Assembly: GCA_965644495.1 (NCBI GenBank)
Contig: CBFFSA010000007.1
Coordinates: forward strand, 620,001 to 684,000
Direction of reading: 5' to 3'
Length of the DNA: 64,000 bases
Source of the DNA: Perkinsela sp. CCAP 1560/9
Lineage: Eukaryota; Protista; Euglenozoa: Kinetoplastea
Both the position numbers and the translations under genes were made by a program. Each line of letters starts with the position of its first letter. Within the stretch, counting starts at the first letter, position 1. Shown here one piece after another: positions 10,454 to 50,137 of the stretch. The notes under the pieces are model-generated. The model saw nothing but the letters and a program-made list of their open reading frames with translations, made no database searches and was not told the DNA's origin.

Positions 10454-11249
10454 AAACGGCGTAAAGTGGGATACAATGGAATAAAAAATGGTGATTTGAT
10501 GCATGATGTGGATCTTCAGCTCCGATTCCTAAAATTTAATTCTTATACCATAAGTGTATACTTGTGCAAAGTAAGGGCGCACATTGGAAATATATGGAAT
10601 GAAGAGGCAGATTGCCTAGCACTTTTGGCAGCTCGTAAAGTGGCTCGTCCTCCGATACCAAAAAGGAGAAAAACAACTGACAACTCGGAAAATCAAGAGA
10701 ATTCCCAGCCTTTATGGTCCTTAAATGCCTTACTCAAAAGGAAATCCCTTGGAAATGCTTCGAGGTATGGTTGCGAGAACTGGCGGTAATAGGAAACCGC
10801 CCAAGTAAGGAAAGAATTGATGGAATTGCATCTTTGTAAACTTGGAATACCTGGAGGATTGTGTGTAGGTTATGGGAAAAATATTGTTTGTTTATACCGT
10901 ATCAGAAACATATAAACTCTGAACTTGGAAGTGATAGATGAAAGCTTCTTGGATTTGGATTCTTATTGGATACAAGGGCGGCGATGTAATGCTGCGCATC
11001 CTAGATAATCTACAAGATCATTGTCGTTGTATTCATTTTAAGTTGAGAGCTAGAAGCGCAAAGTTTTAATTTCTTTACACAAATATTTTTATGAACAGAA
11101 AAAAAATGCCTTTTTGGAAAGGCGAATTTTGCTTTAATTTAACCGACTCCTGTAACTCTGCGAATCACCCCCAAACACGGCACCGGTTGGGTGACCGAAG
11201 GAGGGGCGAAGTACTTTGACGTGGTATTACTGTGACCCCCAAAAAATAC

Positions 11250-11527
11250 AAATCCAAATCATTCCGCATTGCTCCGGATGGCCACTGGCAAGCCAGACCC
11301 TTTACAGACAGATTTGGAAGTTCAGAGGCCGACGTCCTCTACCAGTTTCAGCTTTTTCATGGCGGCACTAACGTGCTGTTGCCAACACGCTGCGTCGACG
11401 AACTGTACGTTGACACGGCTCACCCAAGAGGTGTGAGCCGGATAAGGGGGCTGGTTCCCTGAGGGAAGGGTCCGGGACGGTCCTCCGAGTACTGGGCCTA
11501 GTCGGTTCTCAGCCAAGCCTCTTAGAG
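11250..11527 (-). mobile_element. SINE family 1, 3' module only, joined to a different 5' sequence
   Basis: Near-identical to the 3' ~280 bp of the copies at 12629-13014 and 17075-17465, without the tRNA-like head. Confidence 0.75.
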
Positions 11528-11692
11528 AGGTCCCGCACTACCCTGTAATGGGGTGTCTCCCCTGAGGCACGTGATGCGAGTCACGTAACTTGCCAATGGA
11601 AGGTGGCTGGTTCATCGGACCAAGAAAAGCCTGCCGGTCGGACAAAGGGTGGAGGTCGGAGGGACTATGGCAAAGATTTCTCTATGTAACTA

Positions 11693-12129
11693 GAAGAAGA
11701 AGAAGAAGAAGAAGAAGAAGACACGGAGGGCTCTGCAGGGCCAACCGTTAGGGTAAAGTCTCAGGCCACCGACCTTCATCGTCTTGCTACCCCCTTCCCA
11801 GACGGCACTCGACGCCTTGCGGCCCGAGCACGGCTACCCAACCGTAGCTACCAGGACGGGCGCCCAGCCCTTTGCATCGTGTAGGCTGTGTCTCAAGCCC
11901 CCCTTGCGTAGGCAGCTCGCAATTTAGCGGCTGCGCTGGAGCCTGGTTCAGCTCGGCGGTTCCGGGTCGGTCCTCCAGGGGAGCGGGGTTGGGTGTGGGC
12001 CTCGAAGGCACTCCTGATCGCTTTCCCTTTTTAGTGAGGCCGCCAGGTTGCGAGTTTTGTCGATAGCGGGAATCGAACCCCCAACCTGCAGGTTGTAAGG
12101 CCCACCGTCTACCAACTACGCCCGCACCT
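11693..12129 (-). mobile_element. SINE family 2: tRNA-Val(TAC)-derived head, (TTC)n tail, 121-bp flanking direct repeat
   Basis: Minus strand reads GGCGTAGTTGGTAGACG (A box/D arm), CTTACAA anticodon loop and GGTTCGATTCC (B box). Acceptor stem is broken. (GAA)n at 11693-11720. 11572-11692 is repeated at 12130-12250. Confidence 0.7.
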
Positions 12130-12299
12130 TGATGCGAGTCACGTAACTTGCCAATGGAAGGTGGCTGGTTCATCGGACCAAGAAAAGCCTGCCCGTCGGA
12201 CAAAGGGTGGAGGTCGGAGCGAATATGGCAAAGATTTCTCTATGTAACTAAAAAAAATTGGAACTGAAGGTATGGTGCTTTGGGGGCGCTTGTTCCCGA

Positions 12300-12363
12300 C
12301 AGAGCTGTATAACATACAAACACTGTCGAATGTGCTAACTCTCTGGCCAAGAAGCGTTTGAAA
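12300..12363 (+). pseudogene. Short Merlin transposase fragment
   Basis: HTNTVECANSLAKKRLK, almost the same peptide as in the 5055-5534 fragment. Confidence 0.6.
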
Positions 12364-12628
12364 GCATCTCCGCATTAGTCGTTTAGCGCTGAATAAAATC
12401 ACTTTTCCGAAACCCATTCCGAGCTTGAATTCGGGCATATGTTGCACATTGAAAATGAAAAACGGCACTTGTCAGAAGATCTGCACAAACATACCACCGC
12501 ACAAACATACAAAGCGCCCCATCACCGACGAGCCCCCGAATCATCACACACCCCCAAACACGCGCACGCACACACACCTCTTCCCACACCCCACCCACGC
12601 CCCACCGCCACCACTTTCCACCACTTAG

Positions 12629-13014
12629 GGCGGAGGTGGCGGAGTGGCAAGAACTCAAAGTTTGAAGCACATGGTGCTCAGACGGCGAGTTCAAACCCGC
12701 TCATCGCGTTATTCTTGGCGGCCTCACTCTAAGAGGCTGGGCTGATAACCGACTAGGCCCAGTACTCGGAGGACCGTCCCGGACCCTACCCTCAGGGAAC
12801 CAGCTCCCTTACCCGGCTTACACCTCTTGGGTGAGCCGTGTTGACGTACAATTCGACGACGCAGCATGTTGGCAACAGCACGTTGGTGCCGCCTTGGAAA
12901 AGCGGAAACTGGTAGAGGACGTCGGGCTCTGAACTTCCAAATCTGTCTGTGAAGGTTCTGGCTTGCCAGTGACCATCCGGAGCAATCCGGAATGATTTGG
13001 ATTTTTTTTTTGGA
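12629..13014 (+). mobile_element. SINE family 1, full-length copy with tRNA-derived Pol III promoter
   Basis: A box TGGCGGAGTGG at 12637-12647; B box GAGTTCAAACCC at 12687-12698; 3' hairpin TCCGGAGCAATCCGGA; GGATTT/T-rich tail. Confidence 0.8.
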
Positions 13015-13410
13015 TGGCCACTGGCAAGCCAGACCCTTCACAGACAGATTTGGAAGTTCAGAGGCCGAAGTCCTCTACCAGTTTCCGCTTTTCCATGGCG
13101 GCACCAACGTGCTGTTGCCAACAAGATGCGTCGACGAACTGTACGTTAACACGGCTTCCAAATCCAATCAAAATCCAAATCATTCCGGATTGCTCCGGAT
13201 GGTCATTGGCATGCCAGACCCTTCACAGACAGATTTGGAAGTTCCGAGGCCGACGTCCTCTACCAGTTTCCGCTTGCCCAAGGCGGCACCAACGTGCTGT
13301 TACCAACACGCTGCGTCGACGAACTGTACGTCAACACGGCTTCCCCAAGAGGTGTGAGCCGGTAAGGGGGCTCGTTCCCTGAGGGGAAGGCCTGGGACGG
13401 TCCTCCAAGT
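13013..13410 (-). mobile_element. Two tandem partial SINE family 1 copies (13013-13160, 13161-13410), inverted relative to 12629-13014
   Basis: Direct sequence identity to the SINE body in opposite orientation. Confidence 0.8.
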
Positions 13411-13828
13411 CCCCCGTCTTTCCTTTACTACCAACCACCAGTTAGGTTGGTCCTAACACGTGTTAGGCGTTTAATCAATTTGGCACATGAACCAACCAAC
13501 CAACCAACACTGAGATGTTAGCCCAGTTAAAGGATTCAAAAATTTCCCCTAAATATTTCCACCCTCAAAATATCAACACAGAACACACTTACAGAAAATT
13601 TTTCAAAAACAAACAGACTTTCAATTTCAAGCCTCCTAATCAATCGATCTCTATGAACCATTAGTACTTAGCTTTTGAACACTATAAGACAACTCACCGT
13701 CGCAATCACGTCAGCGAACGTAATTCTTTAATTCACCAAATCTGATGGTAATTAACTTAAATATAACAGAAGCATAGGCTCCAATAGCATCTCTCAAAGT
13801 TAAGTCAAGGAAAGTTAATGTCGTAAGG

Positions 13829-16468
13829 CTAATTCTCCCGCTTATTTCCATGCTTTTTTACATCAATTATACTCTTGTCTTTTCCTTTAGCTGTAAAACA
13901 AGGTTTTTTCTTTGATGTCCTTTTCACTCTCTTTTGTGACTCCTTTTCTTTTTCTGGTTCACTCTTTGTCTGGGATGATGATAAGTCCAAACTTGTATCT
14001 TTTAGACGCTTCATTTGCGGTTTATTTCGTTTCACCTCAATGCTTACGTTCGAATTGGTTATCTGTGGGGGGCTGGAAATTAAGTTGATACCCTTTGTCT
14101 TCTTATGTAAAGAAGCTTTGCGTATGGGAGATTTCGTCCTCTTTTCATTTATTCGAATGCTCCGTTTGGGTTGTTTCGTTGAACGTGAATCGTTTGAGTT
14201 TTCCGACAAAGGGGGCCCCGTAGATACAGGTACTGCTCTTTGGTTTGTGCCTTTTCTAGTCCTCTGAGTTTTAAGACATCTTGAGGTATTATTTTGCTCT
14301 GATTTCCTCTTTGCATTGCCGTGCAATATATCCCCATAGTATTTTATAGCTAGTTCATTTCCTTCCAGCTTGCACGCCTTTTTGGCTAAATAATCTGCGG
14401 TATCGTTGTACATATTTTCATTGTGTGATTTGACCTTGATACAGTAGAATTTTTTAGTATGTTTTGTACTGTAGTAAGCGTTTTGAAGGGATCGCATTGC
14501 TTCGCACCCTTTGAATGAGTGGAACCCAATGAGCCGATACCGATGCACAGTTTCGTGGAAGAAATCCCATATGTACTCTGAATCCGTGTGAAGTATTACA
14601 TCTCCCTCGTAGTTGCTAGCCAGAGAAATTGCCTCGACAACAGCATATGCCTCTATAGATTGTATGGAATCACAGAATTTTTCCGGAGGTCTTGTCCCGT
14701 AGAATAATGTACGTTCGTTGTTTCGTATTATTACTATGCCGCATCCTTGGAGTTGTTTCTTTGTACCCGGAATGAGCGACCCATCCGTATATAAGTGTGT
14801 TTCCGAGTCGCTTATGGGAAAAGGGGTGCTACTTTCTTCCACGTACTGTAGAGTTTGATAGTCCTTGTTTTCCAATATCTTTTTAATACTTTTTTCCCAA
14901 GCAGGAGAACAAGACTTTGTGTAAGAAGGCCGTGGTTCCAGCTCCACCTGTAGTTTTTCCAGTTTCTTCCGCCATGTGGGGCGATCTTGTCCAAGTTGTA
15001 GAATTTCAGTAACATCAGAGTGTAGTTCGTGGGCACACCGTTCGGACAATGTTGGTTTAGAGGCCTCATCATTTGTTCTCCATAGTACTGCTGTAGTAAA
15101 CGGTGTAGGATGGCGCACAAGATGCCCTATTAAGGAAGCTCTCTGTGTCTTAATTACTGTTTCCGGTTTTAAGTCAGTAGGATAAAGCGATTCCGTTCTG
15201 AGATGAGAGTCACAAGCACTTTTTACGCCAAATACAATTCTGCGCATTCTATTTACTTGAACTTGAATATCGTGAAGTTCTGCCTGATTGACATTCCATG
15301 TGCCAGGGTTGTAGTACACGACGGATTGAACGAGTGTTTTGAAAATTTGAAATTTGCAATGAGAGGAGATAGAGGACTTCCATATGGCGCGAAGCTTGTG
15401 CATTACACCCCATCCTAGTCGCAGTCTTTCCTTGGGGGACGTACAGGTATCCTCGGTGTTCTGCGTGCTGCCAAGATATCTGTACTTTTGTACTCTAGGA
15501 ATTTCCCCTAATCCGTCTATTTCTAGTGCGGTATTATCATCCTTCACCTTTCCAAGTGTCATCCAAGCCGTTTTCTGTGGACCAACATTGATTTTAAGGT
15601 TTGCCTTTTCTGCTGAAGCACATAAATTGGTAAGCATGATTTTTAATTCAGGTTTCGTTGCAGCAAACAATACAATATCATCCGCGTAATCAATGTCAGA
15701 AATTCTCAGTTCTTTGAGTCCTCGACTTTTTGTCCCGGATGTGTGCGTTACCAGCCCGAGCTTGTTCATGTCAATAGCCTCTACCAAAATTCGGTCCAGA
15801 ACCATAACAAATAAGTAAGGAGCTAGAACATCTCCTTGAAGAGTGCCGCTTACAATAGGAAAATCTTCCGTTGTTCCGTAAGGGGTCCGTACATGAGATC
15901 GAAGATTTTTGTAAATTGACATCACAGCTGCACTCAGTTTTGGAGGTATTTCAAAAGCTCGGAGAGCCTCTTTTATGGAGTCGAACGATATTGATGGAAA
16001 GGCTTGCTTGAAGTCTACGAAACATGCGTACACGCCTGTTCCTCTGTGCGATTTGCTTGCAATCTCCATAAATGTTGCCTGCGCGCCTGCTGTAGATCGA
16101 TTCGGGCGGAAACCAAATTGGTTCCCACGGAGAGACTTCTCTACTGCTGGTTGGATGCGGTTTAGGATCATTCTGTTCAACACTTTAACCACATGGTTGA
16201 CAAGGCATATTGGTCTCCAATTTCCCAGTGATTGCAAGTTTCCCTTTTTTGGCAGCGGTACCTGTAATATGGACTTCCAAGATTGTTCCGCGTTCCCAGA
16301 TTCATGAACATCGTTCATTATATCAAGCAAAACAGTTCTCAACTCGCTGTCATCTGAAATTGCTCTGAGCGCCTCGATAGGTATGCTATCAGCCCCAGGA
16401 GCTTTTCCCGATTTGACCCGATTTGGCACATGAACAGTTTTAATGCATATAAAGTGTTCACAGTGCAA
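13829..16468 (-). CDS. Non-LTR retrotransposon ORF: reverse transcriptase + RNase H (5'-truncated, no endonuclease domain)
   Basis: KAPGAD, NWRPICL, QFGFRPNRS, FVDFKQAF, GTLQGDVLAP, YADD and YRYLG; RNase H motifs YTDGS, IEAYA, HTDS, VKSH..N..AD. Confidence 0.9.
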   Translation of the reverse strand: MHCEHFICIKTVHVPNRVKSGKAPGADSIPIEALRAISDDSELRTVLLDIMNDVHESGNAEQSWKSILQVPLPKKGNLQSLGNWRPICLVNHVVKVLNRMILNRIQPAVEKSLRGNQFGFRPNRSTAGAQATFMEIASKSHRGTGVYACFVDFKQAFPSISFDSIKEALRAFEIPPKLSAAVMSIYKNLRSHVRTPYGTTEDFPIVSGTLQGDVLAPYLFVMVLDRILVEAIDMNKLGLVTHTSGTKSRGLKELRISDIDYADDIVLFAATKPELKIMLTNLCASAEKANLKINVGPQKTAWMTLGKVKDDNTALEIDGLGEIPRVQKYRYLGSTQNTEDTCTSPKERLRLGWGVMHKLRAIWKSSISSHCKFQIFKTLVQSVVYYNPGTWNVNQAELHDIQVQVNRMRRIVFGVKSACDSHLRTESLYPTDLKPETVIKTQRASLIGHLVRHPTPFTTAVLWRTNDEASKPTLSERCAHELHSDVTEILQLGQDRPTWRKKLEKLQVELEPRPSYTKSCSPAWEKSIKKILENKDYQTLQYVEESSTPFPISDSETHLYTDGSLIPGTKKQLQGCGIVIIRNNERTLFYGTRPPEKFCDSIQSIEAYAVVEAISLASNYEGDVILHTDSEYIWDFFHETVHRYRLIGFHSFKGCEAMRSLQNAYYSTKHTKKFYCIKVKSHNENMYNDTADYLAKKACKLEGNELAIKYYGDILHGNAKRKSEQNNTSRCLKTQRTRKGTNQRAVPVSTGPPLSENSNDSRSTKQPKRSIRINEKRTKSPIRKASLHKKTKGINLISSPPQITNSNVSIEVKRNKPQMKRLKDTSLDLSSSQTKSEPEKEKESQKRVKRTSKKKPCFTAKGKDKSIIDVKKHGNKREN

Positions 16469-16536
16469 AAAGAATGTCTAGTGGAAATGACGAAAACGAA
16501 GATGAGGAAAAAAAATCAAGTGGTTACGTCCCGGGT

Positions 16537-16680
16537 TCGTTGAGTACTCAAAGAAGTGTACAACAGTTCGTTGAGTTCTTAACGAAGTGTCACCACTTGG
16601 TTGATTAATCAACGAAGTGTTATACACTTTGTTGAGTACTCAACGAACTGTTTTACACTTCGTTGAGTACTTAACGAGTA
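16537..16680. repeat. Merlin left subterminal tandem repeats (~31-32 bp, palindromic core CGTTGAGTACTCAACG)
   Basis: About five degenerate units, mirrored at 19135-19275. Confidence 0.85.
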
Positions 16681-16864
16681 TTTTTGTTCGTGATCGTGAG
16701 TATTCTTTTTGATGATGATGATGTATTCTTTTTACATTCGTTAGGCCCAGGAAGTGCACATTTATATCAAATTTCAAAAGAAAATAATAGAAAGCAAGAA
16801 TAGCAAATATATTCAAGTTTAACGTGTTTTCTTATCAACTATTCGCAAAGAAAGTTAACGGTTC

Positions 16865-18426
16865 ATGGCGCGCGACAACCCCAATCGAATTGAGGACGCG
16901 GAAGATTTGGTTCGCCGTTTTCGTTCTTATATTGATCGTCAGAATCGCAACAGTGAGCGCTTGAGTGGCAACAGTGAGCGCTTTAATCAGGGCGATGGTG
17001 ATGTGCCTTGGGAAGATCAACGAGTTGAAATTCCATCTACGCAAGTTGCTCGTCGCACTTGTAGTGGATGTGTTCCAAATCCAAAAAAAAATCCAAATCA
17101 TTCCGGATCGCTCCGGATGGTCACTGGCAAGCCAGACCCTTCACAGACAGATTTGGAAGTTCCGAGGCCGACGTCCTCTACCAGTTTCCGCTTGTCCAAG
17201 GCGGCACCAACGTGCTGTTGCCAACATGCTGCGTCGACGAACTGTACGTCAACACGGCTTACCCAAGAGGTGTAAGCCGGGTAAGGGAGCTTGTTCCCTG
17301 AGGGGAGGGTCCGGGACGGTCCTCCGAGTACTGGGCCTAGTCGGTTATCAGCCCAGCCTCTTAGAGTGAGGCCGCCGGGAATATTGCGATGAGCGGGTTT
17401 GAACTCGCCGTCTGAGCACCATGTGCTTCAAACTTTGAATTCTTGCCACCCCGCCACCCCCACCATGGATGTGTTGGGTTTGCGTGCGTTCGTTCGTGGA
17501 AAAACTTGCGCCACATTCCTCAAGGCGAGTCCGCCATCGAATGGATGTTAAACAATCATTTGCTTCGACACCCTCGTTGCGAAAAACATGGCCCTGACTA
17601 CATGAGGGAAGTACGCGGAAGACCGCACATAGAAATATGTACGTATCGTGCTGACGATGATCGCAACCCATGTCGTGCGCGAGCGTTTAGATTCTCCCCT
17701 TTTTTGAACAGTCGCCCTGCGGTGGATGTAGACACTCTTCTTCTAATGTGGGGGGAAATCGCGAACAACCTCACGACAGGGCTAATCAGTCGTAACCGTG
17801 GAGTGCGGCAAGGCACCTTTACAAAGTTCCTTCACATGGTAGGTAACGCAGCGTTCCACCAACAGGAAAACACGGATTTTAACTTTTCCAAACTGCAAGT
17901 GGATGAAACATTCATAGGAAAGCGGAAATATAACCGTGGGAAAAGGGTCCGAAAAATAGGATGGTGGTTCGTCACGGTGACAGAAATCGATGATCGGAAA
18001 ATGGGCCGAACACACTGGAAACTGGTAAAGCGCCGTGATCAAGAAACCCTTCTGAACTTTATAACCCCACATCTAACAAGAGCTCGGTCCGTCGTGGTTA
18101 CGGATGAATGGCGAGGGTACTGGAACCTTGGTGATTATTGCCGGCACTTCACTGTAAACCACAGCAAGGAGTTTTTCACTTTGAGGGGCCACCATGCCAA
18201 TCACGCGGAAGCTGCGCATCGAACCATTCAACAATGGACGAAACAGCAACACTACAACTATGGGGCGACATCGATGGACCTTCGGCGAAACGTGGCTCTC
18301 CAATGCGTCAAATATGGCTACGGCAAAACAGAGCGACGAAAATCGTGGCAGACTCGGTTCATTAACATTCTCGAATGCATCTGCACTCATTACGGGTACG
18401 AGGAAATGACGAGCAGTTGGATGTAA
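16865..18426 (+). pseudogene. Merlin DDE transposase interrupted by a SINE
   Basis: QVDETFIGKRKYNRG, VTDEWRGY and TVNHSKEF motifs; 16865-17074 joins 17476-18426 in frame (RTCSGCV|GFACVR) once the SINE and one TSD copy are removed. Confidence 0.9.
17075..17465 (-). mobile_element. SINE family 1, full-length copy with 10-bp TSD
   Basis: TGGATGTGTT at 17065-17074 and 17466-17475; tRNA-like head near 17385-17465; tail at 17075-17100. Confidence 0.9.
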
Positions 18427-19134
18427 GCGATAGCTCCTTCTCATTCTACTTGAGCGAAGACGCATCAATTTCCAGCGAATACATACTAGGGAGTGATGAA
18501 TCGGAATAAATAAGCAGACCTTTTCGTAGAGAAATACACACTACATACTATATCCCAGCGGCGTCCACAGCAACGGTTCTCGTACATAAAATCGTATTCA
18601 AGATTTTCTGTGGTTTTTCTTGGTGTCGCGCGTATTGATTCTTTTCGAATTATCCATAGCATAGTCAGCATTCAAAAATTTATGCATAATATGGAGCAGA
18701 TTTTCTGACATCCAATTCGTTCGTCCACAGCACCGGTTATTTGTACATAAAATCGCATCCAGGATTTTCTGTGGTTTTTCTTGGTGACGCGCGTATTCTC
18801 TTTTTTCCGATATTCTAGAGCATAATAATCAGCTAAATGTTCGTGCATAACGTTTCTGGAGGAAACATCTCGCATTTAATTAGTTTCTTCGATGCAACGA
18901 TTAATTGTAAATCCTGCGGAAGGGGTAAACACAGGTTCTCAGTGCGCGACCCGCGCGCTCCAGCGCGCGGGTCGCCAAAAAATATTATTATGTCCCAGGA
19001 CTAAGCTCACAGTTGGGCCTTGCTTGTGGACTTGGGCTTCGCTCACAGTTGGACCTTGCCTCTGGACAATCCTGGAAGACAACCCTGGAAGTGGCAGACA
19101 TAGGTTCTCAGTGCTTGACCCCGCGAAAACACAC

Positions 19135-19275
19135 TCGTTGAGTACTCAACCAAGTGTACAACAGGTCGTTGAGTACTCAACGAAGTGTCACCACTTGGTT
19201 GAATAAGCAACGAAGTGTTATACAGTTCGTTGTGTACTCAATGAAGTGTAGAACAGGTCGTTGAGTACTCAACGA
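19135..19275. repeat. Merlin right subterminal tandem repeats
   Basis: Same unit as 16537-16680. Confidence 0.85.
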
Positions 19276-20449
19276 ACCCGGGACATAGCCAATCAAGTTT
19301 TTTCTTTTGGGAAAAAAGTCCCCTTTCTATTTTATACACTGCCTAAGGCGAGAGTCAAAGCTTAATACCATACCTTGTTGGTTCATGAACCAATGAAAAA
19401 CCTTTGTACAGTGGTCGTCGGCATAACGTGCCTTTCTCTAGAATGCGCCATTTTTGTTTGTTTTTGCTTATTGTTGTAGCAGTGAAGAGATATCAGTTGG
19501 CGAGCTTGTGCCAAAGATGGAGTCATTTCTCTAAAATGAACAATTTTTCCGAAATTTTTGCGAACGATAAAATATTCTTTTTTTTTTGTTTGTAAAAGAT
19601 GACTCTTTTTTTGGAATCGTTTTTGGGTTTCTTCTACAGTTTATGTACTTACATAACACCGTGAGGGATTGTGTATTCCCTTCTACACATTTTTACATGA
19701 TACACTTTCCTATGGTACATAAATCGAATCATTATGAGCCTTCTTGTAACACACAGGAACATGGCATTCCAATCTGGGTGCGCAAAGCAAATAACTTTCT
19801 TATGAGCCCCATTGCGGGGATAGGGGTGTTGTTCTGCGCAAAACGCCCAATGCCGTCAGTATCTGTAGATATGTTCGGGTTTCAGTGAGTCGCTGTGGGC
19901 TGCTTTGATTCGCTGCGACTAGATGTGAGTATCGCGATAGACGAGTCAGAATCCAGAATAACCAGGTGTCTCCACCCCAAACTCCTATGGCACCCCAGGC
20001 TTGACATCTTGGCGCCCAGCGTACTTTTTTCTTCAGGCAGGTTGTTGGACGGCATAAATCTTCCTCAATGAACTTCGGCTGAGCAGCTCAGCCAGATTCT
20101 CCTGAAAGGGAGTATGCCCGTCCTCTTACTCACTAAGTTGATGATGATGATGGTGATTTGGGTCTTTTGACTCCGAAAAGTTATGGCCCCTCAACTCCCC
20201 AAACGGGTAGTCCGAATACTTCTTGGCAGCAAGCTATGGCTGACCTCCGCTTGGAGAGGAGTGAGGTTTCCAAACATTATTCTCCAATAAAGGGAGCCAA
20301 TAATTAACAGCTCGGATAGGAGGGGCTCGCTACTCCCCAACATGGTTTAACATGTTAAGCCACGACCCTGCCTAACTTTAAATTGTTGTGTGGATACTAC
20401 CCTAGTTTCTTGAAGTCTTGTTTTACTGACGCCGGGTAGTTCCACAACA

Positions 20450-20820
20450 TGGGGGATGGTGGCGGCGAAGGGGTCGGCGAAAGGGGGCGCGGCCGAGAGC
20501 GCGATCGGAGAGAGAGCGCGGCGGGGAGCACGACGGGAAGCTCGGCGGGATCTGCGGCGGGGAGCTCGCGGAGAAGCGCGGCTGGGAGAGCGGCGGGGAG
20601 CGGCGGAGAGGACGAGAAGGCGGGCGAGTAGGCGGCCAGCTGCGGGTGCGCAGGGGGCGAGCAGGGAGCAAGCAGGGTAGCGAGCAGTGCGGCCAGCAGG
20701 CGGAGAGCTGTGTGGCGAGCAGGGGGCGAGAAGGGCGGTGCACGGGGGGCCAGGAGGGCGGCGCACGATCGGGGGAGGGCGGCGCACAAAGGGGGAGGGA
20801 AGGGGGCGGGCGGGTGAGTT
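20450..20820. repeat. G-rich low-complexity tract with degenerate GGCGGGAGC-type repeats
   Basis: Very T-poor, G-rich plus strand; overlapping ORFs are compositional artefacts. Confidence 0.7.
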
Positions 20821-21159
20821 AGCTCGGGAATCTGGGGTCGCTAAGCCCCATCATCCGACAAAAGTCGAATACCCTGACTACCGCATACTTACAAGGATAT
20901 AAAGGGGGGGTCACGAAAAAGGTGGGGGGTCTAAAATTTGTACCGTGCGAGCTTTTGACCTAATTCCTTCAGCATTCAACAGATCTCGAAATTTTAAGAC
21001 TACTGGCACCATTGTTGCCGCCCCTGAAGCTGATATGACGTCATGTTAAAATTTTACTGAATTTTTTACCTGAAAATTCTGCAAAAAATCGGATTTTTAT
21101 CAATTTAGCCCATTAATCTATGAATAAAATACCACTTAACTCTTTCTAACACATCTTTT

Positions 21160-22505
21160 ATGCCGAAAACACTTCGCCGCCAGAGGCGCACCCTCTCGAC
21201 GCAACAAATCACTTATGAAACACGTGTAATTTGCGTCCATGAGGTACAAAACCAGGGACGTTCGATTACAGACACTGCTGCTCTTATGAAATGCAGTGAA
21301 GCAACTGTCTCTCGATGGGTTAAGCGCCGCCGGGAGACAGGAGGGTTAGAACGTATAAAATACATACGTAAGAATGCGATTGATAATGAAGAGTTTCGAA
21401 TAATGTTAGAATCTATTGTAGATGAAGAAAATCAACGTAGTCCCATTGGCTGTCCATCTTGGAGGTTTGTTCACCACCAGATCGATCAAACCAAGTACCC
21501 ATGCTCTCTTTCGTCTGTGAAAAGATCACTGAAAAGGAGCGGGTACATAAGCAGAAAAATGAGGAAAGTTCCTCATCTCACGCCTCAGCAAAAATTCGAC
21601 CGCCTGGAGTTGGCAAATCGTTTGGAGAGGTTCACCCCTTTTCAATACGCCCGTATTCTGTGGACGGATGAAAAGATTTTTAAATGCGGGTACCACTCAC
21701 GCAATATTTGGTACATTTGCAAAAGGTCAGATGAACCCCTTGAGGTACCAAAAGATGTTGAGAAATATTTCGGAGGAAAGGGGGTTCATATTTGGATGGC
21801 GGTGAGCCTTGAATGGGGGGTTCCCAAGGTTCACTGTTTTCATGAGTTTGAGGAGAATGAGACGGTCACTAATGAAACGTTTCTCTCTGAATTGTTCATC
21901 ATCGTATTTGTAACAAATAGAAAGATACCACACAATAACATATTCGTTTCACCAGCGCATATTTCCTTCTGCATATATTACTAATAACACTTTGAACTCG
22001 TGTAATCCAATCCAAAGATAAAATATTTTTTCACTGGGACGTCCCTTCATATAAATCATAACTTCCAACCAATCACTGTCCTACACTGTATACCTTGCGA
22101 TCGGGTAGTACCACGCGGGGACCACCCGGGAGTGGTTTGGGGGATGGTGGGCGGGGCAACTTTCCTTACGCGAATAGGGAGTGAAAGACAAACTACAAGG
22201 TGACAATTGTAATTTTTCTATAAACATATTAATCACATATTAATAGATCATAATAAAATATTATTATGTGCCCCGTAGGGCCAAACATGCCCTCTATAAT
22301 ATAGAAAACCTGCAAATCCTCTTCAAACATTTCTTTTCGTAAACTATAAGCCATGACAAAACGAAATGGTTTCTACAACTGGTTAAAGCGTAAACCAGCG
22401 GCAACAGTGATCATGGATAACGCTCCGGGCCATAATCACGCTCGACGCGTCGGCAGAGACATGGGTATCAGCATTCCTGATTGGCCTGCCAAGTCGCCGG
22501 ATTTA
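21160..22505 (+). pseudogene. Tc1/mariner transposase interrupted by a ~460-bp insertion and 3'-truncated
   Basis: HTH (TAALMKCSEATVSRW), LWTDEK and VHIW; resumes at 22353 with IMDNAPGH...WPAKSPDL. Confidence 0.85.
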
Positions 22506-22783
22506 AAGTTTCGCAAGAGACGTATGCTCCCAGAAATTCAGGCCGAAAGGGCTATGTTGTACCCAAAAAGATTCCAGAAGCTGAAATTGACACTGCTTCC
22601 TCGCGCTCACGTGACGCTTGTTGCGGTTAATCAATAGATTGAGGCGTCAAAAGCGCTCTTCAAGTAAGAGGGAAGCGCGATGTACGAGTGCGGGAGGTCC
22701 GAGGAAACCTCAAAATTTCCGTGCTCCAAATATATCCGGAAGAGGCGGCCGGACTCTGCGGATGATGATGATACCAGCTATTT

Positions 22784-23065
22784 TCAGGAACGCTTCCCCC
22801 ATTGCGATAGGGCGACAGGCCGGGAGCTCGTCAGTAGGGGGGGATTCTCTTTTCGGATTAGCAAAAGTCGGGATGTCGTAAGTTCGTTTCGGAGATCAGG
22901 CTTTAATTTGTTGTTTAGAATGCCTTCCAGGGTCCACACCAGGCATTCGAAGACTTCCGGGATATCCAAGAAAGGGAAAACCAACTCCCGGGTCCATGCC
23001 GATGTACCGGGGGCGTCCCCCCGTGCCATGTGAGAAACTCCGTCTCGGACCTCTTCCTCGTTCAA
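22784..23065 (-). pseudogene. CRE-like reverse transcriptase N-terminal fragment
   Basis: APGTSAWTREL...SRLLLIRK...RPVAL. Confidence 0.6.
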
Positions 23066-23182
23066 TTTAACATCCTTCGTTGGGCGGATAGCTAGGTCTG
23101 GTATAACCCCATCCTATTCTAATAGACCGATTTTCATCGGTTAAGAGCACTTCCGTTTTTGTTTTCAAAAAAACAAAAAACT

Positions 23183-23593
23183 TTACAGGTTTTGTGCACC
23201 TGCGAGAGCCAAGGTGTCTTGCCTTATCATTGTATACTGTATGTTCCCGTTGTGCGATTTCACTTTGCACAAGTAACACCTTTTATCTCTTGCCTGGGTA
23301 GTTCGTATTTCGAGATCTAATTTCTCTGGTGTAAAGTAGCCTTTTTTGTGGAATTTTTCCGCTACCCGTAGCGCGACGTCCGGGGGAAGAGGAGTTCGTG
23401 AAGAGTCGAGCGCCCGTGCTGCTCTGCCAAGTGCGCGTGCTATTGCCAATAGATCAGCTCTCAGTGTGCTCGATATCGGGCTCTGCATCCTTTTCTCTGT
23501 TTGCTCGTGAAAAGTTGGTTCCATAGAAGTGCTTCGGTAGCGTATTTCATGTGCCATGGCTCTTTCACTCATATGCTGTCGAGTAAGTAACAT
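23183..23593 (-). pseudogene. Degenerate retroelement RNase H fragment
   Basis: RADLLAIARAL and YLCKVKSHNGN resemble the RNase H motifs of the other retroelements here. Confidence 0.45.
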
Positions 23594-23837
23594 ATAGCGT
23601 TTTACAGCTTCGGTTAATTTCCATACAAGCGCAATTTTCCCTTCTTGCGCGCTTTCGCGAAAAGGAAGGCATATCTTCTTTCAGATCTCCTTCCACGGGG
23701 GTATCTGCGCATGGGAGGAAGAGAAAGAAGCTCCATGAAAGGAAGTATTGCTTCTATATTTTCTGGTTCATGCGGCCTATTTACGTCGTTTACTATTCTT
23801 TCGAGCAATGTTCCTTCGGGGGACGCATCCTCCGTTC

Positions 23838-24240
23838 AAAACAAAAATCATTCCGGATTGCTCCGGATGGTCACTGGCAAGCCAGACCCTTCACAGACAG
23901 ATTTGGAAGTTCCGAGGCCGACGTCCTCTACCAGTTCCCGCTTGCCCAAGGCGGCACCAACGCGCTGTTACCAACACGATGAGCCCACGAATTGTACGTC
24001 GACACGGCTCACCCAAGAGGTGTGAGCCGGGTAAGGGAGCTGGTTCCATGAGGGGGGGTCCAAAAATCCAAAACAAAAATCCATAATGGGGGGGTCCGGG
24101 ACGGTCCTCCAAGTACTGGGCCTAGTCGGTTCTCAGCCAAGCCTCTTAGAGTGGCCGCCGGGAATAATGCGTTGAGCGGGTTTGAACTCGCCGTCTGAGC
24201 ACCATGTTCTTCAAACTTTGAATTCTTGCCACTCCGCCAA
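23838..24240 (-). mobile_element. SINE family 1, near full-length copy
   Basis: A box (complement CCACTCCGCCA near 24229-24239), B box, body and tail present; small internal insertion near 24055-24090. Confidence 0.85.
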
Positions 24241-36114: not shown

Positions 36115-39027
36115 CTACAAATAGTACGGCATTTGTCGCAGTTCCATTCCCACGTTTGGCTTGGCAGCGGAGGAGGTTCCGTGGAAGAATGCCAACTTGC
36201 TTGCGCATTGCAGGACGAAGGGTGCCTTGATGGATCCGGGCCAGTTCGTGTACATCCAGCACAGGTGGTAGGACATGTTCTCTATAGCTTGCAAGGGCAA
36301 ACCGCCATCACGGAGCACAAAGTACTTGACCGGTTTCGAGGTAGCCAGGGTGCAGTCGACAGCGATTTGGGAAAAGGAGTGGGAGCTGTGCTCGACAACA
36401 TGTCCACGAGGAATGTTGTGCCACTCCACCCGTCCGCCCTTTGATACTGGCGCTGCGTAGCGATCATGAATACGTTTCTGGACTACCATGAAGGTAAGTT
36501 CAACGTTTTTGCTTCCGAGTAATTTTTCACAGTCCGCCATCTCTTCAACGCGCACACGGTCCATCATGCTGTCTCCCACACCGTCGCGGTACACTACAAC
36601 GCGTCCGACATTGGAACCTTTCACGAGCACCTCGAACACTTCTTCGAGAAATTCCTTCAATGTAGTCATGCTCATGCGATCCATCACTGGGCTACGTCCG
36701 TCAGTCTGCTCACTCGCGGCTCCAGCATTGCGGCGGCTTTCAGTCGATGATCCTCCCATCATCTTCTGTCGGGACACCTGCATGTCTGTGTTGCACAAAT
36801 GGCTCCACTTTCGAGTCTCCGCATTGTAGTACCAGGCTACAAAACCAGCGAGGTTGCGACGTTGATTTTCGAAGGATCCGGATTCACTTGCTTCGCTTTT
36901 GCGATCGCTATAGATATCGTAGCCCACGTAGATGGTGCCATTTGCTCCAAGCTCCGGAACGTTGCTCGGAATGTCAACCAGCCACAATGGCGTACCCATC
37001 TTAGCAGTCACATTCTTCGCAATGTTGTGAACATAGGGTCCTGCCGTTTTTGCCTTGCTCATCTTGTCAAAGTCTACGAATTGGGAGACGATGCCCATAG
37101 ACCCCAGTTCGCTCTTCAACGTGCCGTAGGCATCCTGACCACGTGTGCTGTGGCCGTTGCTGAGGACGCATAGCACAAGGGCGGGTGTACCTTCCGCCAT
37201 GGCCTGGCGTACGGCATCGGTTCGCACGGAGTCCAAGCATTTGTCGATAAAGTCGCGGTCGTCTTCACCACTATCGACGAAGGTGACAGGTCCTTTCGCC
37301 TTCCATACGCCACGAATGCGTTCGTTGACATCCATAATTTGACGCACTAAGTCACGAGCCTTAGCACCCCAACCAAAGACTTGGTATTCTTTGCGTTCCT
37401 CGTTGAACTGAATCCGCATGGTCTGGGGAGCGAAATCTTGATTCGGGCGGAGAGTCTCTGGAGAGCCAACGATCTGGACTTTGACGGTCTTCATTTCTTT
37501 CGGTTGTATGGTTTCCAATGCCGCATTCTTGATCTGAAGGCCGTATCCGCTCAGGAGCTCTTTCGGTTCCTGTTCATCGAATCTCTTCACCAACTTGATA
37601 CACTGATCTTGCATTTCCTCGGGCATCTTGGAGCATCGCGTCGGAAGGAAGCGTCGTGCTTCAGTGCTTAATTGGTCCACAAGGACGAATTCAGGAATGA
37701 GGCGGACGCGGCCGGAGCGCTCACCCCAGATAAGAGGCTGATCCGTCTTTGTAACCTCCAACCCATACGTCTCCTTGTAGTAATCCGCATAAGAGATCGT
37801 TCGTCCGCTCTTAAGCTCGAAGACGGACTCCACCGTCGTCCCCTTATCCACTTTGTAGACCATGTAGTTGCGCTTCCTCGTTCCGTAAGACGTCATCACC
37901 TTGAGACCCAGCAGACTGCGCGGCCCGTTCTTGTTGAGGTAGTCCAGCGCAGTTACACGTGCTTCCACATGACTTCGAGGATGAACAATGAGAACAACAC
38001 CGTTGTCTGTCAACTGGAATGTTGCAAAGTAACCAGGTACCACAATCATATCGCGATACACACGTTGCCGAGTGAAATCGCAGTATATTTTTCCTGTTCG
38101 GCGAAGATCTAATGATTCCAGAATTCGGCATAACACATGATTGTACACTTGCATCGTTTGTTCCTCATTAGAGCGGGGGTTGAGTTGCACCTTAGTGATG
38201 TCTTCTTTGCGTAGTTCCATTGTGGTCTTGAAAGATCCAAGGGAGACTTCACGTGAAAGCGGTTCTTGCAAATGTTCGGAGATATCCTCAAGGCAATAAA
38301 AGTTAGTTCCAGAGATGATCAAATCGAGCTTCTTGAGGTATTCCTTTTCTAAGACTTGGCGAAGATATCCGAATAGAAGCTTCTTACGTTGAATTTCGCT
38401 GATGTTTTCATTTTTCTCGATGCTGAGGGGATACATGTAGACCTCCGCCTTACTGATGGAGACACTGACAGCATTCCACATTACGTCGCGGCATGGTGCA
38501 CGCTGACGGAGGGCGTCACGTTCGGATGCCATCAAACGACCACGTTCCGTCCTGTCTTTATCAGCCCAGAAACGATCCCAACAGCCACTGCAACAGCGTT
38601 TATTGGGGACGTCCGCATGCTTTCCTACTCGGCATAACTTACCACAGCTGTCGCATTTGGCGTACTCGCTCCCAATGAAGGGCATCATGCTTCCGGTGCC
38701 CGGACCACCTCCCATGGGACCGCCCATCGGACGGGGACCACCGGGTGCACCACCCGGAGGGCCACCTGGTCGTCCTCCAGGAGCTGGGCCACGATCGTCT
38801 CTTCGGTAGTTGTCGTTTCGGCGATCATCGCGGCGGTTGTCATCCCGGCGATAGTCTTGGCGGTGGTCACGCGAGCGATCGTCCCTGCGATAGTCGTCGC
38901 GACGGTCATCGCGTCGATAATCATCACGACGGTCATCGCGCCGATAATCATCACGACGATCATCGCGCCGATAATCATCGCGCCGGTAGTCGTCACGTCG
39001 GTAGTCGTCGCGTCGATTGTAACTCAT
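36115..39027 (-). CDS. AGO1: Argonaute/PIWI protein, copy 1
   Basis: PAZ (ISYADYYKETYGLEVTKTDQPLI..LIPE), MID (YGTLK...IVSQ..N..AKMG), PIWI (VGYD, YRDGVG, VVQKR, NWPG..KLA). Confidence 0.92.
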   Translation of the reverse strand: MSYNRRDDYRRDDYRRDDYRRDDRRDDYRRDDRRDDYRRDDRRDDYRRDDRSRDHRQDYRRDDNRRDDRRNDNYRRDDRGPAPGGRPGGPPGGAPGGPRPMGGPMGGGPGTGSMMPFIGSEYAKCDSCGKLCRVGKHADVPNKRCCSGCWDRFWADKDRTERGRLMASERDALRQRAPCRDVMWNAVSVSISKAEVYMYPLSIEKNENISEIQRKKLLFGYLRQVLEKEYLKKLDLIISGTNFYCLEDISEHLQEPLSREVSLGSFKTTMELRKEDITKVQLNPRSNEEQTMQVYNHVLCRILESLDLRRTGKIYCDFTRQRVYRDMIVVPGYFATFQLTDNGVVLIVHPRSHVEARVTALDYLNKNGPRSLLGLKVMTSYGTRKRNYMVYKVDKGTTVESVFELKSGRTISYADYYKETYGLEVTKTDQPLIWGERSGRVRLIPEFVLVDQLSTEARRFLPTRCSKMPEEMQDQCIKLVKRFDEQEPKELLSGYGLQIKNAALETIQPKEMKTVKVQIVGSPETLRPNQDFAPQTMRIQFNEERKEYQVFGWGAKARDLVRQIMDVNERIRGVWKAKGPVTFVDSGEDDRDFIDKCLDSVRTDAVRQAMAEGTPALVLCVLSNGHSTRGQDAYGTLKSELGSMGIVSQFVDFDKMSKAKTAGPYVHNIAKNVTAKMGTPLWLVDIPSNVPELGANGTIYVGYDIYSDRKSEASESGSFENQRRNLAGFVAWYYNAETRKWSHLCNTDMQVSRQKMMGGSSTESRRNAGAASEQTDGRSPVMDRMSMTTLKEFLEEVFEVLVKGSNVGRVVVYRDGVGDSMMDRVRVEEMADCEKLLGSKNVELTFMVVQKRIHDRYAAPVSKGGRVEWHNIPRGHVVEHSSHSFSQIAVDCTLATSKPVKYFVLRDGGLPLQAIENMSYHLCWMYTNWPGSIKAPFVLQCASKLAFFHGTSSAAKPNVGMELRQMPYYL

Positions 39028-47224: not shown

Positions 47225-50137
47225 TTACAAATAGTACGGCATTTGTCGCAGTTCCATTCCCACGTTTGGCTTGGCAGCGGAGGAGGTTCCGTGGAAGAAT
47301 GCCAACTTGCTTGCGCATTGCAGGACGAAGGGTGCCTTGATGGATCCGGGCCAGTTCGTGTACATCCAGCACAGGTGGTAGGACATGTTCTCTATAGCTT
47401 GCAAGGGCAAACCACCATCACGGAGCACAAAGTACTTGACCGGTTTCGAGGTAGCCAGGGTGCAGTCGACAGCGATTTGGGAAAAGGAGTGGGAGCTGTG
47501 CTCGACAACATGTCCACGAGGAATGTTGTGCCACTCCACCCGTCCGCCCTTTGATACTGGCGCTGCGTAGCGATCATGAATACGTTTCTGGACTACCATG
47601 AAGGTAAGTTCAACGTTTTTGCTTCCGAGTAATTTTTCACAGTCCGCCATCTCTTCAACGCGCACACGGTCCATCATGCTGTCTCCCACACCGTCGCGGT
47701 ACACTACAACGCGTCCGACATTGGAACCTTTCACGAGCACCTCGAACACTTCTTCGAGAAATTCCTTCAATGTGGTCATGCTCATGCGATCCATCACTGG
47801 GTTACGTCCGTCAGTCTGCTCACTCGCGGCTCCAGCATTGCGGCGGCTTTCAGTCGATGATCCTCCCATCATCTTCTGTCGGGACACCTGCATGTCTGTG
47901 TTGCACAAATGGCTCCACTTTCGAGTCTCCGCATTGTAGTACCAGGCTACAAAACCAGCGAGGTTGCGACGTTGATTTTCGAAGGATCCGGATTCACTTG
48001 CTTCGCTTTTGCGATCGCTATAGATATCGTAGCCCACGTAGATGGTGCCATTTGCTCCAAGCTCCGGAACGTTGCTCGGAATGTCAACCAGCCACAATGG
48101 CGTACCCATCTTAGCAGTCACATTCTTCGCAATGTTGTGAACATAGGGTCCTGCCGTTTTTGCCTTGCTCATCTTGTCAAAGTCTACGAATTGGGAGACG
48201 ATGCCCATAGACCCCAGTTCGCTCTTCAACGTGCCGTAGGCATCCTGACCACGTGTGCTGTGGCCGTTGCTGAGGACGCATAGCACAAGGGCGGGTGTAC
48301 CTTCCGCCATGGCCTGGCGTACGGTATCGGTTCGCACGGAGTCCAAGCATTTGTCGATAAAGTCGCGGTCGTCTTCACCACTATCGACGAAGGTGACAGG
48401 TCCTTTCGCCTTCCATACGCCACGAATGCGTTCGTTGACATCCATAATTTGACGCACTAAGTCACGAGCCTTAGCACCCCAACCAAAGACTTGGTATTCT
48501 TTGCGTTCCTCGTTGAACTGAATCCGCATGGTCTGGGGAGCGAAATCTTGATTCGGGCGGAGAGTCTCTGGAGAGCCAACGATCTGGACTTTGACGGTCT
48601 TCATTTCTTTCGGTTGTATGGTTTCCAATGCCGCATTCTTGATCTGAAGGCCGTATCCGCTCAGGAGCTCTTTCGGTTCCTGTTCATCGAATCTCTTCAC
48701 CAACTTGATACACTGATCTTGCATTTCCTCGGGCATCTTGGAGCATCGCGTCGGAAGGAAGCGTCGTGCTTCAGTGCTTAATTGGTCCACAAGGACGAAT
48801 TCAGGAATGAGGCGGACGCGGCCGGAGCGCTCACCCCAGATAAGAGGCTGATCCGTCTTTGTAACCTCCAACACATACGTCTCCTTGTAGTAATCCGCAT
48901 AAGAGATCGTTCGTCCGCTCTTAAGCTCGAAGACGGACTCCACCGTCGTCCCCTTATCCACTTTGTAGACCATGTAGTTGCGCTTCCTCGTTCCGTAAGA
49001 CGTCATCACCTTGAGACCCAGCAGACTGCGCGGCCCGTTCTTGTTGAGGTAGTCCAGCGCAGTTACACGTGCTTCCACATGACTTCGAGGATGAACAATG
49101 AGAACAACACCGTTGTCTGTCAACTGGAATGTTGCAAAGTAACCAGGTACCACAATCATATCGCGATACACACGTTGCCGAGTGAAATCGCAGTATATTT
49201 TTCCTGTTCGGCGAAGATCTAATGATTCCAGAATTCGGCATAACACATGATTGTACACTTGCATCGTTTGTTCCTCATTAGAGCGGGGGTTGAGTTGCAC
49301 CTTAGTGATGTCTTCTTTGCGTAGTTCCATTGTGGTCTTGAAAGATCCAAGGGAGACTTCACGTGAAAGCGGTTCTTGCAAATGTTCGGAGATATCCTCA
49401 AGGCAATAAAAGTTAGTTCCAGAGATGATCAAATCGAGCTTCTTGAGGTATTCCTTTTCTAAGACTTGGCGAAGATATCCGAATAGAAGCTTCTTACGTT
49501 GAATTTCGCTGATGTTTTCATTTTTCTCGATGCTGAGGGGATACATGTAGACCTCCGCCTTACTGATGGAGACATTGACAGCATTCCACATTACGTCGCG
49601 GCATGGTGCACGCTGACGGAGGGCGTCACGTTCGGATGCCATCAAACGACCACGTTCCGTCCTGTCTTTATCAGCCCAGAAACGATCCCAACAGCCACTG
49701 CAACAGCGTTTATTGGGGACGTCCGCATGCTTTCCTACTCGGCATAACTTACCACAGCTGTCGCATTTGGCGTACTCGCTCCCAATGAAGGGCATCATGC
49801 TTCCGGTGCCCGGACCACCTCCCATGGGACCGCCCATCGGACGGGGACCACCGGGTGCACCACCCGGAGGGCCACCTGGTCGTCCTCCAGGAGCTGGGCC
49901 ACAATCGTCTCTTCGGTAGTTGTCGTTTCGGCGATCATCGCGGCGGTTGTCATCCCGGCGATAGTCTTGGCGGTGGTCACGCGAGCGATCGTCCCTGCGA
50001 TAGTCGTCGCGACGGTCATCGCGTCGATAATCATCACGACGGTCATCGCGCCGATAATCATCACGACGATCATCGCGCCGATAATCATCGCGCCGGTAGT
50101 CGTCACGTCGGTAGTCGTCGCGTCGATTGTAACTCAT
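47225..50137 (-). CDS. AGO1: Argonaute/PIWI protein, copy 2
   Basis: 970 aa, five residues different from copy 1. Confidence 0.92.
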   Translation of the reverse strand: MSYNRRDDYRRDDYRRDDYRRDDRRDDYRRDDRRDDYRRDDRRDDYRRDDRSRDHRQDYRRDDNRRDDRRNDNYRRDDCGPAPGGRPGGPPGGAPGGPRPMGGPMGGGPGTGSMMPFIGSEYAKCDSCGKLCRVGKHADVPNKRCCSGCWDRFWADKDRTERGRLMASERDALRQRAPCRDVMWNAVNVSISKAEVYMYPLSIEKNENISEIQRKKLLFGYLRQVLEKEYLKKLDLIISGTNFYCLEDISEHLQEPLSREVSLGSFKTTMELRKEDITKVQLNPRSNEEQTMQVYNHVLCRILESLDLRRTGKIYCDFTRQRVYRDMIVVPGYFATFQLTDNGVVLIVHPRSHVEARVTALDYLNKNGPRSLLGLKVMTSYGTRKRNYMVYKVDKGTTVESVFELKSGRTISYADYYKETYVLEVTKTDQPLIWGERSGRVRLIPEFVLVDQLSTEARRFLPTRCSKMPEEMQDQCIKLVKRFDEQEPKELLSGYGLQIKNAALETIQPKEMKTVKVQIVGSPETLRPNQDFAPQTMRIQFNEERKEYQVFGWGAKARDLVRQIMDVNERIRGVWKAKGPVTFVDSGEDDRDFIDKCLDSVRTDTVRQAMAEGTPALVLCVLSNGHSTRGQDAYGTLKSELGSMGIVSQFVDFDKMSKAKTAGPYVHNIAKNVTAKMGTPLWLVDIPSNVPELGANGTIYVGYDIYSDRKSEASESGSFENQRRNLAGFVAWYYNAETRKWSHLCNTDMQVSRQKMMGGSSTESRRNAGAASEQTDGRNPVMDRMSMTTLKEFLEEVFEVLVKGSNVGRVVVYRDGVGDSMMDRVRVEEMADCEKLLGSKNVELTFMVVQKRIHDRYAAPVSKGGRVEWHNIPRGHVVEHSSHSFSQIAVDCTLATSKPVKYFVLRDGGLPLQAIENMSYHLCWMYTNWPGSIKAPFVLQCASKLAFFHGTSSAAKPNVGMELRQMPYYL

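Follow-up and report, generated by a model that had tools for sequence, protein, structure and literature searches.

The DNA analysed here, called the window throughout, is a stretch of 64,000 nucleotides (contig CBFFSA010000007.1, positions 620,001 to 684,000). Repeat finding in its 10–26 kb section returned a family of non-coding repeats of ~380 bp, present in both orientations, which we name SINE1. The full copy at 12629–13010 served as the reference query, and a BLAST search of the window with this copy gave six SINE1 loci: two full copies, one near-complete copy and three that are 5′-truncated or internal. This agrees with the six copies or fragments claimed in an earlier note on this DNA, which had described the family as a tRNA-derived short interspersed element (SINE), and the A-box, B-box and 3′ hairpin motifs quoted there all lie where it had placed them. 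Alongside the SINE1 copies are a Merlin DNA transposon, a 5′-truncated long interspersed element (LINE) and a second SINE family, SINE2 (Table 1).

Table 1. SINE1 copies, their parts and associated elements, in window positions except where a G000 position is given.
Feature	Position	Strand	Remarks
SINE1, full copy, 382 bp	12629..13010	+	BLAST; older or diverged member, 95–96% identity to others
A-box motif TGGCGGAGTGG	12637..12647	+	0 mismatches to TRGCNNAGTGG; from element position 9
B-box motif GAGTTCAAACC	12688..12698	+	2 mismatches to GGTTCGANNCC; 51 nt start-to-start from A box
Core blocks common to SINE1 and SINE2, TGGCGGCCTCACT and GGAGGACCGnCCCGGA	12714..12790	+	Just behind SINE1 head
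3′ hairpin TCCGGA-GCAA-TCCGGA	12976..12991	+	6-bp stem, GNRA-type loop; motif found
Spacer ATGA and TTTGGA/T-run tail	12992..13010	+	Tail variable among copies
SINE1, young, full-length, inside Merlin transposase gene	17075..17465	-	Insert; BLAST span 17083–17458; flanked by target-site duplication
SINE1, 5′-truncated, with tail	11242..11527	-	BLAST; element positions 99–382
SINE1, internal fragment	13012..13156	-	BLAST; element positions 206–350; adjoins tail of + copy
SINE1, 5′-truncated	13170..13410	-	BLAST; element positions 136–377; tail ~13145–13169
SINE1, near full-length, with 28-nt internal insert	23845..24239	-	BLAST; element positions 9–370
SINE2, second SINE family	11699..12129	-	~420 nt; tRNA-like head, (TTC)n tail
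Resident LINE, 5′-truncated (RT + RNase H)	13490..16468	-	3′ end hairpin + (TTGG)n; illustrates the class of machinery but is not the proposed partner
Merlin (DDE_Tnp_IS1595) DNA transposon, repeat-rich inverted ends	16509..19303	+	Host of the SINE1 copy at 17075–17465
LINE families with 5′ arrays, L043 and L078	G000:C26:27300-30800 (L043); G000:C8:54900-56400 (L078)		One array 51 units, other >1 kb

The copy at 17075–17465 is bounded by a 10-bp target-site duplication (TSD), TGGATGTGTT, at 17065–17074 and 17466–17475. When the insert and one copy of the TSD were removed in silico, a 388-codon open frame resulted over the Merlin junction. The empty site itself occurs in two Merlin paralogues (contigs C29 and C9; 96–97% identical), which are intact and carry a single TGGATGTGTT. 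The empty-site paralogues and the restored frame thus bear out the proposal that this copy is an insertion with a 10-bp TSD, out of which the Merlin open reading frame (ORF) rejoins in frame. Contigs of two public runs contain a form that skips 17065–17465 (401 bases) with a 10-nt overlap. We considered this SINE-skipping joint as a sign of insertion polymorphism and rejected it, as the joint derives most simply from the two empty Merlin paralogues.

We surveyed 33 full copies for TSDs, with 45-bp flanks each. The check for TSDs in other copies, which the earlier note had called for, was positive: clear TSDs flank about 18 of the 33, with lengths of 8–26 bp and a median of about 11. Most of the other full copies are nested among further copies or have a 5′ repeat array in front of them. 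For the reference copy no TSD is detectable because it sits within a nest of SINE1 fragments. The flanks of the 33 copies are unrelated to one another. At the 5′ junctions, 1–8 extra bases are often found; the 3′ tails vary among copies, and 5′-truncated copies are common. Variable TSDs, extra 5′ bases, a variable tail and 5′ truncation point jointly to target-primed reverse transcription by a LINE enzyme, and it is very probable that SINE1 is a SINE mobilised by a LINE reverse transcriptase. The same marks exclude a long terminal repeat (LTR), the untranslated region (UTR) of a larger element, a miniature inverted-repeat transposable element (MITE) and a satellite. That SINE1 might turn out to be an LTR or a UTR had been named as a way in which the earlier description could fail; the unrelated flanks, the variable length of the TSDs and the empty-site paralogue indicate a stand-alone element instead.

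The family could in principle have spread without retroposition, either as a structured non-coding RNA gene family multiplied by segmental duplication or as a MITE moved by a DNA transposase. Some SINE1 copies do lie within tandem segmental repeats, and the SINE1 RNA folds somewhat more stably than its shuffles (z = -2.6), as such a reading would have it. Neither route, however, fits TSDs that range from 8 to 26 bp, an element without terminal inverted repeats, 5′-truncated copies with variable microsatellite tails, or the existence of an exact empty site. The chance that this account is correct is minute, and for the bulk of the copies it is refuted by the TSDs and the empty site.

To place these copies in context, the own genome (21 Mb in 110 contigs) was searched with SINE1. 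The search gave 255 candidates, of which the 40 that were scored are 95–96% identical to the query. The family lies well above what chance would give. We also counted two exact 26-nt motifs through the whole genome and not in a sample, allowing up to 2 mismatches. This gave 158 occurrences of the head motif and 204 of the 3′ hairpin motif, against 0 for each reversed control, and the shortfall of heads relative to 3′ motifs is consistent with 5′ truncation. The copy number is roughly 160–200. The 33 full copies have a mean pairwise identity of 97%, and their mean distance to the majority sequence is 1.7%; from this low divergence we take the family to be young, and judging from the sequences it is probably still active.

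Several copies in the window are nested or interrupted. In the nest at 12629–13457, a full plus-strand copy stands tail to end with an inverted internal fragment and is followed by a 5′-truncated minus-strand copy. The latter, the piece at 13170–13410, has the same orientation as a LINE whose tail lies 80 bp upstream of it. We considered whether this piece was the 3′ UTR of the window LINE and rejected the idea, since four other copies of that LINE end at (TTGG)n, with unrelated DNA after the tail. A LINE end and a 5′-truncated SINE1 are also paired on the same strand at G000:C1:1410211-1413188; such pairings could be chance nesting or template switching. In the copy at 23845–24239, a 28-nt T-rich insert of GGA type (24062–24091) has ACCCCCCC on either side, and looks like a retro-insertion truncated to its tail.

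The head of SINE1 carries an A box and a B box of the type that RNA polymerase III (Pol III) uses. A shuffled 64-kb window would be expected to contain 0.025 such pairs, counting both strands, and at that stringency the SINE1 heads are the sole matches in the real window. Of 42 genuine tRNAs of the genome, only 5 satisfy this filter. Runs of four or more T are absent from the 370-nt body, and most tails contain a T run. With relaxed settings, ARAGORN draws a cloverleaf on the head at element positions 2–80 or 5–80, with six of seven acceptor-stem pairs (two of them G-U) and four of five T-stem pairs; as this threshold yields 37 matches per 64 kb, the drawing is weak evidence. On the strength of the boxes and their spacing, we regard a Pol III promoter function of the head as moderately probable.

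The tRNA-like head may alternatively be a processing signal. Long polycistronic units transcribed by RNA polymerase II (Pol II) are typical of kinetoplastids, and SINE1 might be transcribed passively within them, its 5′ end being set by RNase P-type cleavage at the base of the degenerate acceptor stem, in a role analogous to that of the hepatitis delta virus (HDV)-like ribozyme of L1Tc. Kinetoplastid retroposons are indeed known to free their 5′ ends from co-transcripts by means of the Pr77 ribozyme, and E. coli RNase P RNA reportedly recognises the L1Tc 5′ UTR in vitro as resembling a tRNA (PMC4035085). The relaxed-ARAGORN cloverleaf sits exactly at the start of the element, and the RNA 5′ end appears sharply defined from the stutter units described below. 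Yet the cloverleaf is weak at the threshold that draws it, and the boxes fit the Pol III consensus better than do most of the own tRNAs, which suggests selection on a promoter and not on a fold. A body without T4 that ends in a T run also fits Pol III. We hold the processing reading to be unlikely.

At the other end of the element, the hairpin at 12976–12991 is followed by ATGATTTGGA and then by a T run. Across the family, the tails are (TnGGA)n with n from 3 to 13, and a few copies have pure (TTGGA)n. The tail had been described as T-rich rather than A-rich; it is T-rich and not A-rich, but it is not simply T-rich, being a (TnGGA)n microsatellite like those of the resident LINEs. A search of the own genome with the LINE protein of the window gave 629 candidates. 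The resident LINEs have a single ORF with APE endonuclease, reverse transcriptase (RT) and RNase H domains. We inspected about 15 representative LINE 3′ ends, a sample of the genome's LINEs, and all have a 6-bp hairpin, of the form RCCGAY-loop-RTCGGY or, in one group, CTGGG...CCCAG. The hairpin is followed by 3–4 nt and then by a family-specific repeat, (TTGG)n, (TTG)n, (ATAGG)n or (TTGGA)n. SINE1 has the 3′ build of the (TTGGA)n group, namely a 6-bp hairpin, a 4-nt spacer and TnGGA repeats.

The 5′ end provides a second tie to the LINEs. Extra tandem units, 2–4 added copies of the first 18–24 nt of the element, stand at the start of 5 of the 33 full copies (about 15%). Because these stutter units lie inside the TSD, they were written during insertion. 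Two LINE families, with (TTGG)n and (TTGGA)n tails, likewise have at their 5′ ends long tandem arrays whose 18-nt unit repeats their own first bases (Table 1). The presence of the stutter in SINE1 as in the LINEs links both to one kind of reverse transcriptase. In addition, the SINE1 units begin at the same few bases, which would put the RNA's sharply defined 5′ end about 8 nt upstream of the A box. As the 18-nt unit of the LINEs is a multiple of three, their arrays read through in frame and inflate the apparent ORF length.

A shared stutter would also be expected if SINE1 were an internally deleted LINE of the RIME/NARTc/SIDER type, with the LINE 5′ end and its Pr77-like promoter and ribozyme as head and the LINE 3′ UTR as body. 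From trypanosomatids, short retroposons of no other kind have been reported (PMC12278014, PMC4035085), and a 10-mer, GGCCCAGTAC, together with a GCCTCA block, is common to SINE1 and published Pr77 sequences. By our estimate, however, a 10-mer match to the Pr77 panel is expected by chance about once per two comparisons; we judged this match to be at chance level and rejected the link to Pr77 and the HDV-like ribozyme that it had suggested. The 5′ ends of two LINE families, one of them (TTGGA)n-tailed, consist of AT-rich 18-nt arrays followed by unrelated sequence, and BLAST of SINE1 against three LINE 5′ regions gave chance-level matches only. The SINE1 body is without similarity to 13 LINE 3′ regions, the element has no poly(A) tail, and Rfam finds no HDV-like ribozyme in it. 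Mainly from the 5′ ends of the two LINE families, an origin of this type is disfavoured, and we think it highly improbable.

The interpretation that we prefer is that SINE1 is a young, ~380-nt, non-autonomous non-LTR retroposon, that is, a SINE, transcribed by Pol III and mobilised by a LINE; from its sequence features we give this a probability of about 0.7. Several results weigh against it. At default settings ARAGORN finds no tRNA in SINE1, and the Rfam tRNA model gives no match even at E ≤ 10. More broadly, Rfam (the window at gathering thresholds, the elements at E ≤ 10) returned no tRNA, 5S, 7SL, small nuclear RNA or HDV ribozyme for SINE1. A profile of the 42 own tRNAs scores it at E = 30, which is not significant, in a test that has power, as the SINE2 head was detected at E = 1e-8. 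Pairwise alignment to the same 42 tRNAs gave no parent, the best being tRNA-Gly(CCC) with 17 of 21 positions at the 5′ end (p about 0.06), and RNAfold folds the head as a rod-like hairpin and not as a cloverleaf. At the 3′ end, BLAST of SINE1 against the 13 LINE 3′ regions gave chance-level matches only, so that the common ground is the architecture of hairpin, spacer and tail, and the hexamer/T-run tail of SINE1 is unlike the LINE pentamer. Lastly, SINE1 copies lie partly in segmental tandem arrays with periods of ~2.0, 5.4 and 6.5 kb, and because they are carried within these larger repeats, the motif counts overstate the number of independent insertions. Fixed periods of ~1995, 6485 and 5438 bp are seen at G000:C2:1012-16739, C1:2639302-2665242 and C9:161124-177463, respectively.

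These results bear on two parts of the earlier description. The A and B boxes stand at tRNA-like positions and are non-random, but significant similarity to a tRNA was found neither by Rfam, nor by ARAGORN at default, nor by the own-tRNA profile. To judge from its sequence, the head is tRNA-like in its promoter boxes, in their positions and in a partial cloverleaf, and no parent RNA can be assigned to it; in place of 'tRNA-derived', the milder 'with tRNA-type Pol III boxes' is appropriate. The proposed look for a LINE sharing the 3′ end gave a similarly divided answer, in that the architecture matches the (TTGGA)n LINEs but extended identity is lacking in the 13 LINE 3′ regions. That the partner is among the (TTGGA)n LINEs, as the anatomy would suggest, is about an even bet.

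SINE2 has the same head–core–tail layout as SINE1 but differs in its tail, which is (TTC)n in SINE2 and (TnGGA)n in SINE1. Apart from its match to the own-tRNA profile, the SINE2 head scores 17 bits with the Rfam tRNA model and 19 bits with that of mascRNA, both below the cut-offs. The window copy is flanked by an unusually long direct repeat or TSD of 127 bp (11572–11698 and 12130–12256; 96% identical). Genome-wide there are 114 SINE2 candidates, and contigs C5 and C15 hold many of these in arrays of regular spacing. Just behind the head, the two families have core blocks in common, a likeness that is significant, its score having been attained in 0 of 500 shuffles. No significant resemblance was seen between their heads (p about 0.19) or between their 3′ bodies (p about 0.07). 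A common core combined with apparently exchangeable heads and with tails specific to particular LINEs is the modular build typical of SINE superfamilies. When metagenomes were scanned with a 19-mer from the core, six high-GC contigs came up; they have nothing else in common with SINE1 and were discarded.

If SINE1 works as its parts suggest, Pol III would transcribe a master copy from an internal type-2 promoter (A box at +9, B box at +60), starting ~8 nt upstream of the A box and terminating at the T run within the tail. With its 3′ end the RNA would mimic that of the (TTGGA)n APE-RT-RNaseH LINEs, as its anatomy indicates, and a LINE reverse transcriptase would take the RNA as template. Target-primed reverse transcription would then leave the products that we observe, namely TSDs of 8–26 bp, 5′ truncations, extra 5′ bases and stutter. 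A wider proposal, which we offer tentatively and regard as somewhat doubtful, is that there is a superfamily of Pol III-driven SINEs in kinetoplastid-type protists with a conserved core and with swapped heads and LINE-specific tails, that the (TnGGA)n tail of SINE1 serves both as Pol III terminator and as LINE mimic, and that any template which the partner reverse transcriptase completes has its first ~20 nt re-copied. The occurrence of the stutter on SINE1 too makes it a property of the reverse-transcription machinery and not of LINE sequence. SINE1 offers a 380-nt template for studying this 5′ re-copying reaction and, should the proposal be true, a small and tractable reporter for it.

The Merlin element that received the 17075–17465 insertion has inverted ends at 16509–16685 and 19127–19303, built from TCGTTGAGTACTCAACGAAGTGT-like units, and at least three copies that are 96–97% identical. 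Merlin is the sole DNA transposon reported from kinetoplastids, and a study of it in Perkinsela and Bodo found neither terminal inverted repeats nor TSDs (PMC8101967). Elsewhere in the window, a gene for a 970-aa Argonaute with PAZ and Piwi domains is present in three tandem copies (36115–39027, 47225–50137 and 60310–63222), ~11–13 kb apart. The genes of the window are long and intron-free. A sequence that we take to be the kinetoplastid spliced-leader core, CAGTTTCTGTACTnTATTG, has five matches in the genome at one mismatch and 0 in the control. The matches are dispersed (G000:C3:214246, C5:790775, C12:255060, C21:14576 and C9:532533), four reading CAGTTTCTGTACTTTGTTG and one CAGTTTCTGTACCTTATTG. 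The published spliced-leader primer of Perkinsela CCAP 1560/4 has no match in the genome at up to 3 mismatches. A word search with the neighbouring 609-aa ORF matched nothing but unnamed ENA proteins. From these sequence characters, we accept the host as 'kinetoplastid-type'.

In such a host, a SINE with a predicted Pol III promoter would be an addition to a lineage whose mobilome surveys list only ingi/L1Tc-derived short elements. In the literature that we searched, SINEs of Pol III type are not reported from kinetoplastids, and the Perkinsela genome paper mentions ingi-type elements but no SINE (PMC5601477). The suggestion that this is an undescribed SINE family thus holds up, SINE1 being a real and new family of classical architecture. 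As a young family with a hit in the gene of another transposon, SINE1 is probably active and could serve as an insertion-polymorphism marker between isolates. For annotation, roughly 200 copies and fragments should be masked and not called tRNA or structured non-coding RNA genes.

The short retroposons of trypanosomatids, RIME, NARTc and SIDER, are deletion derivatives of ingi/L1Tc (PMC4035085; PMC12278014), and the literature found upholds the earlier statement that all the known ones have this origin (PMC12278014, PMC4035085). They start with the 77-nt Pr77, which combines a Pol II promoter with an HDV-like ribozyme, have both ends in common with the LINE, and carry poly(A) (PMC4035085, PMC12278014). 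SINE1 is like them in being short and non-coding, in having TSDs, in its presumed trans-mobilisation by an APE-RT-RNaseH LINE, and in coming from the same broad host lineage. It differs in its A and B boxes and its (TnGGA)n tail, and it matches neither of the LINE 5′ ends examined. By its sequence, SINE1 would fall outside the ingi-derived class, as it has neither the Pr77 ribozyme, nor LINE-identical ends, nor poly(A).

Classical tRNA-type SINEs pair with stringent LINEs, which have a 3′ stem-loop and a microsatellite, as with UnaSINE1 and UnaL2 of eel, or the salmonid and tortoise SINEs with RSg-1/CR1-type elements. SINE1 differs from these in that it has no recognisable parent tRNA and resembles LINE 3′ ends in architecture only, its tail is at the same time a T run, the first 18–24 nt are re-copied in tandem in some copies, and the host is of kinetoplastid type. 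What it has in common with them is the three-part build, in which a body follows a head carrying A and B boxes and leads to a LINE-like 3′ hairpin with short tandem repeats after it. Further shared traits are TSDs of variable length, 5′ truncation, and a conserved core found also in a second family with a different tail. As far as its predicted features go, SINE1 is a classical SINE in all but a demonstrable tRNA parent and a proven partner.

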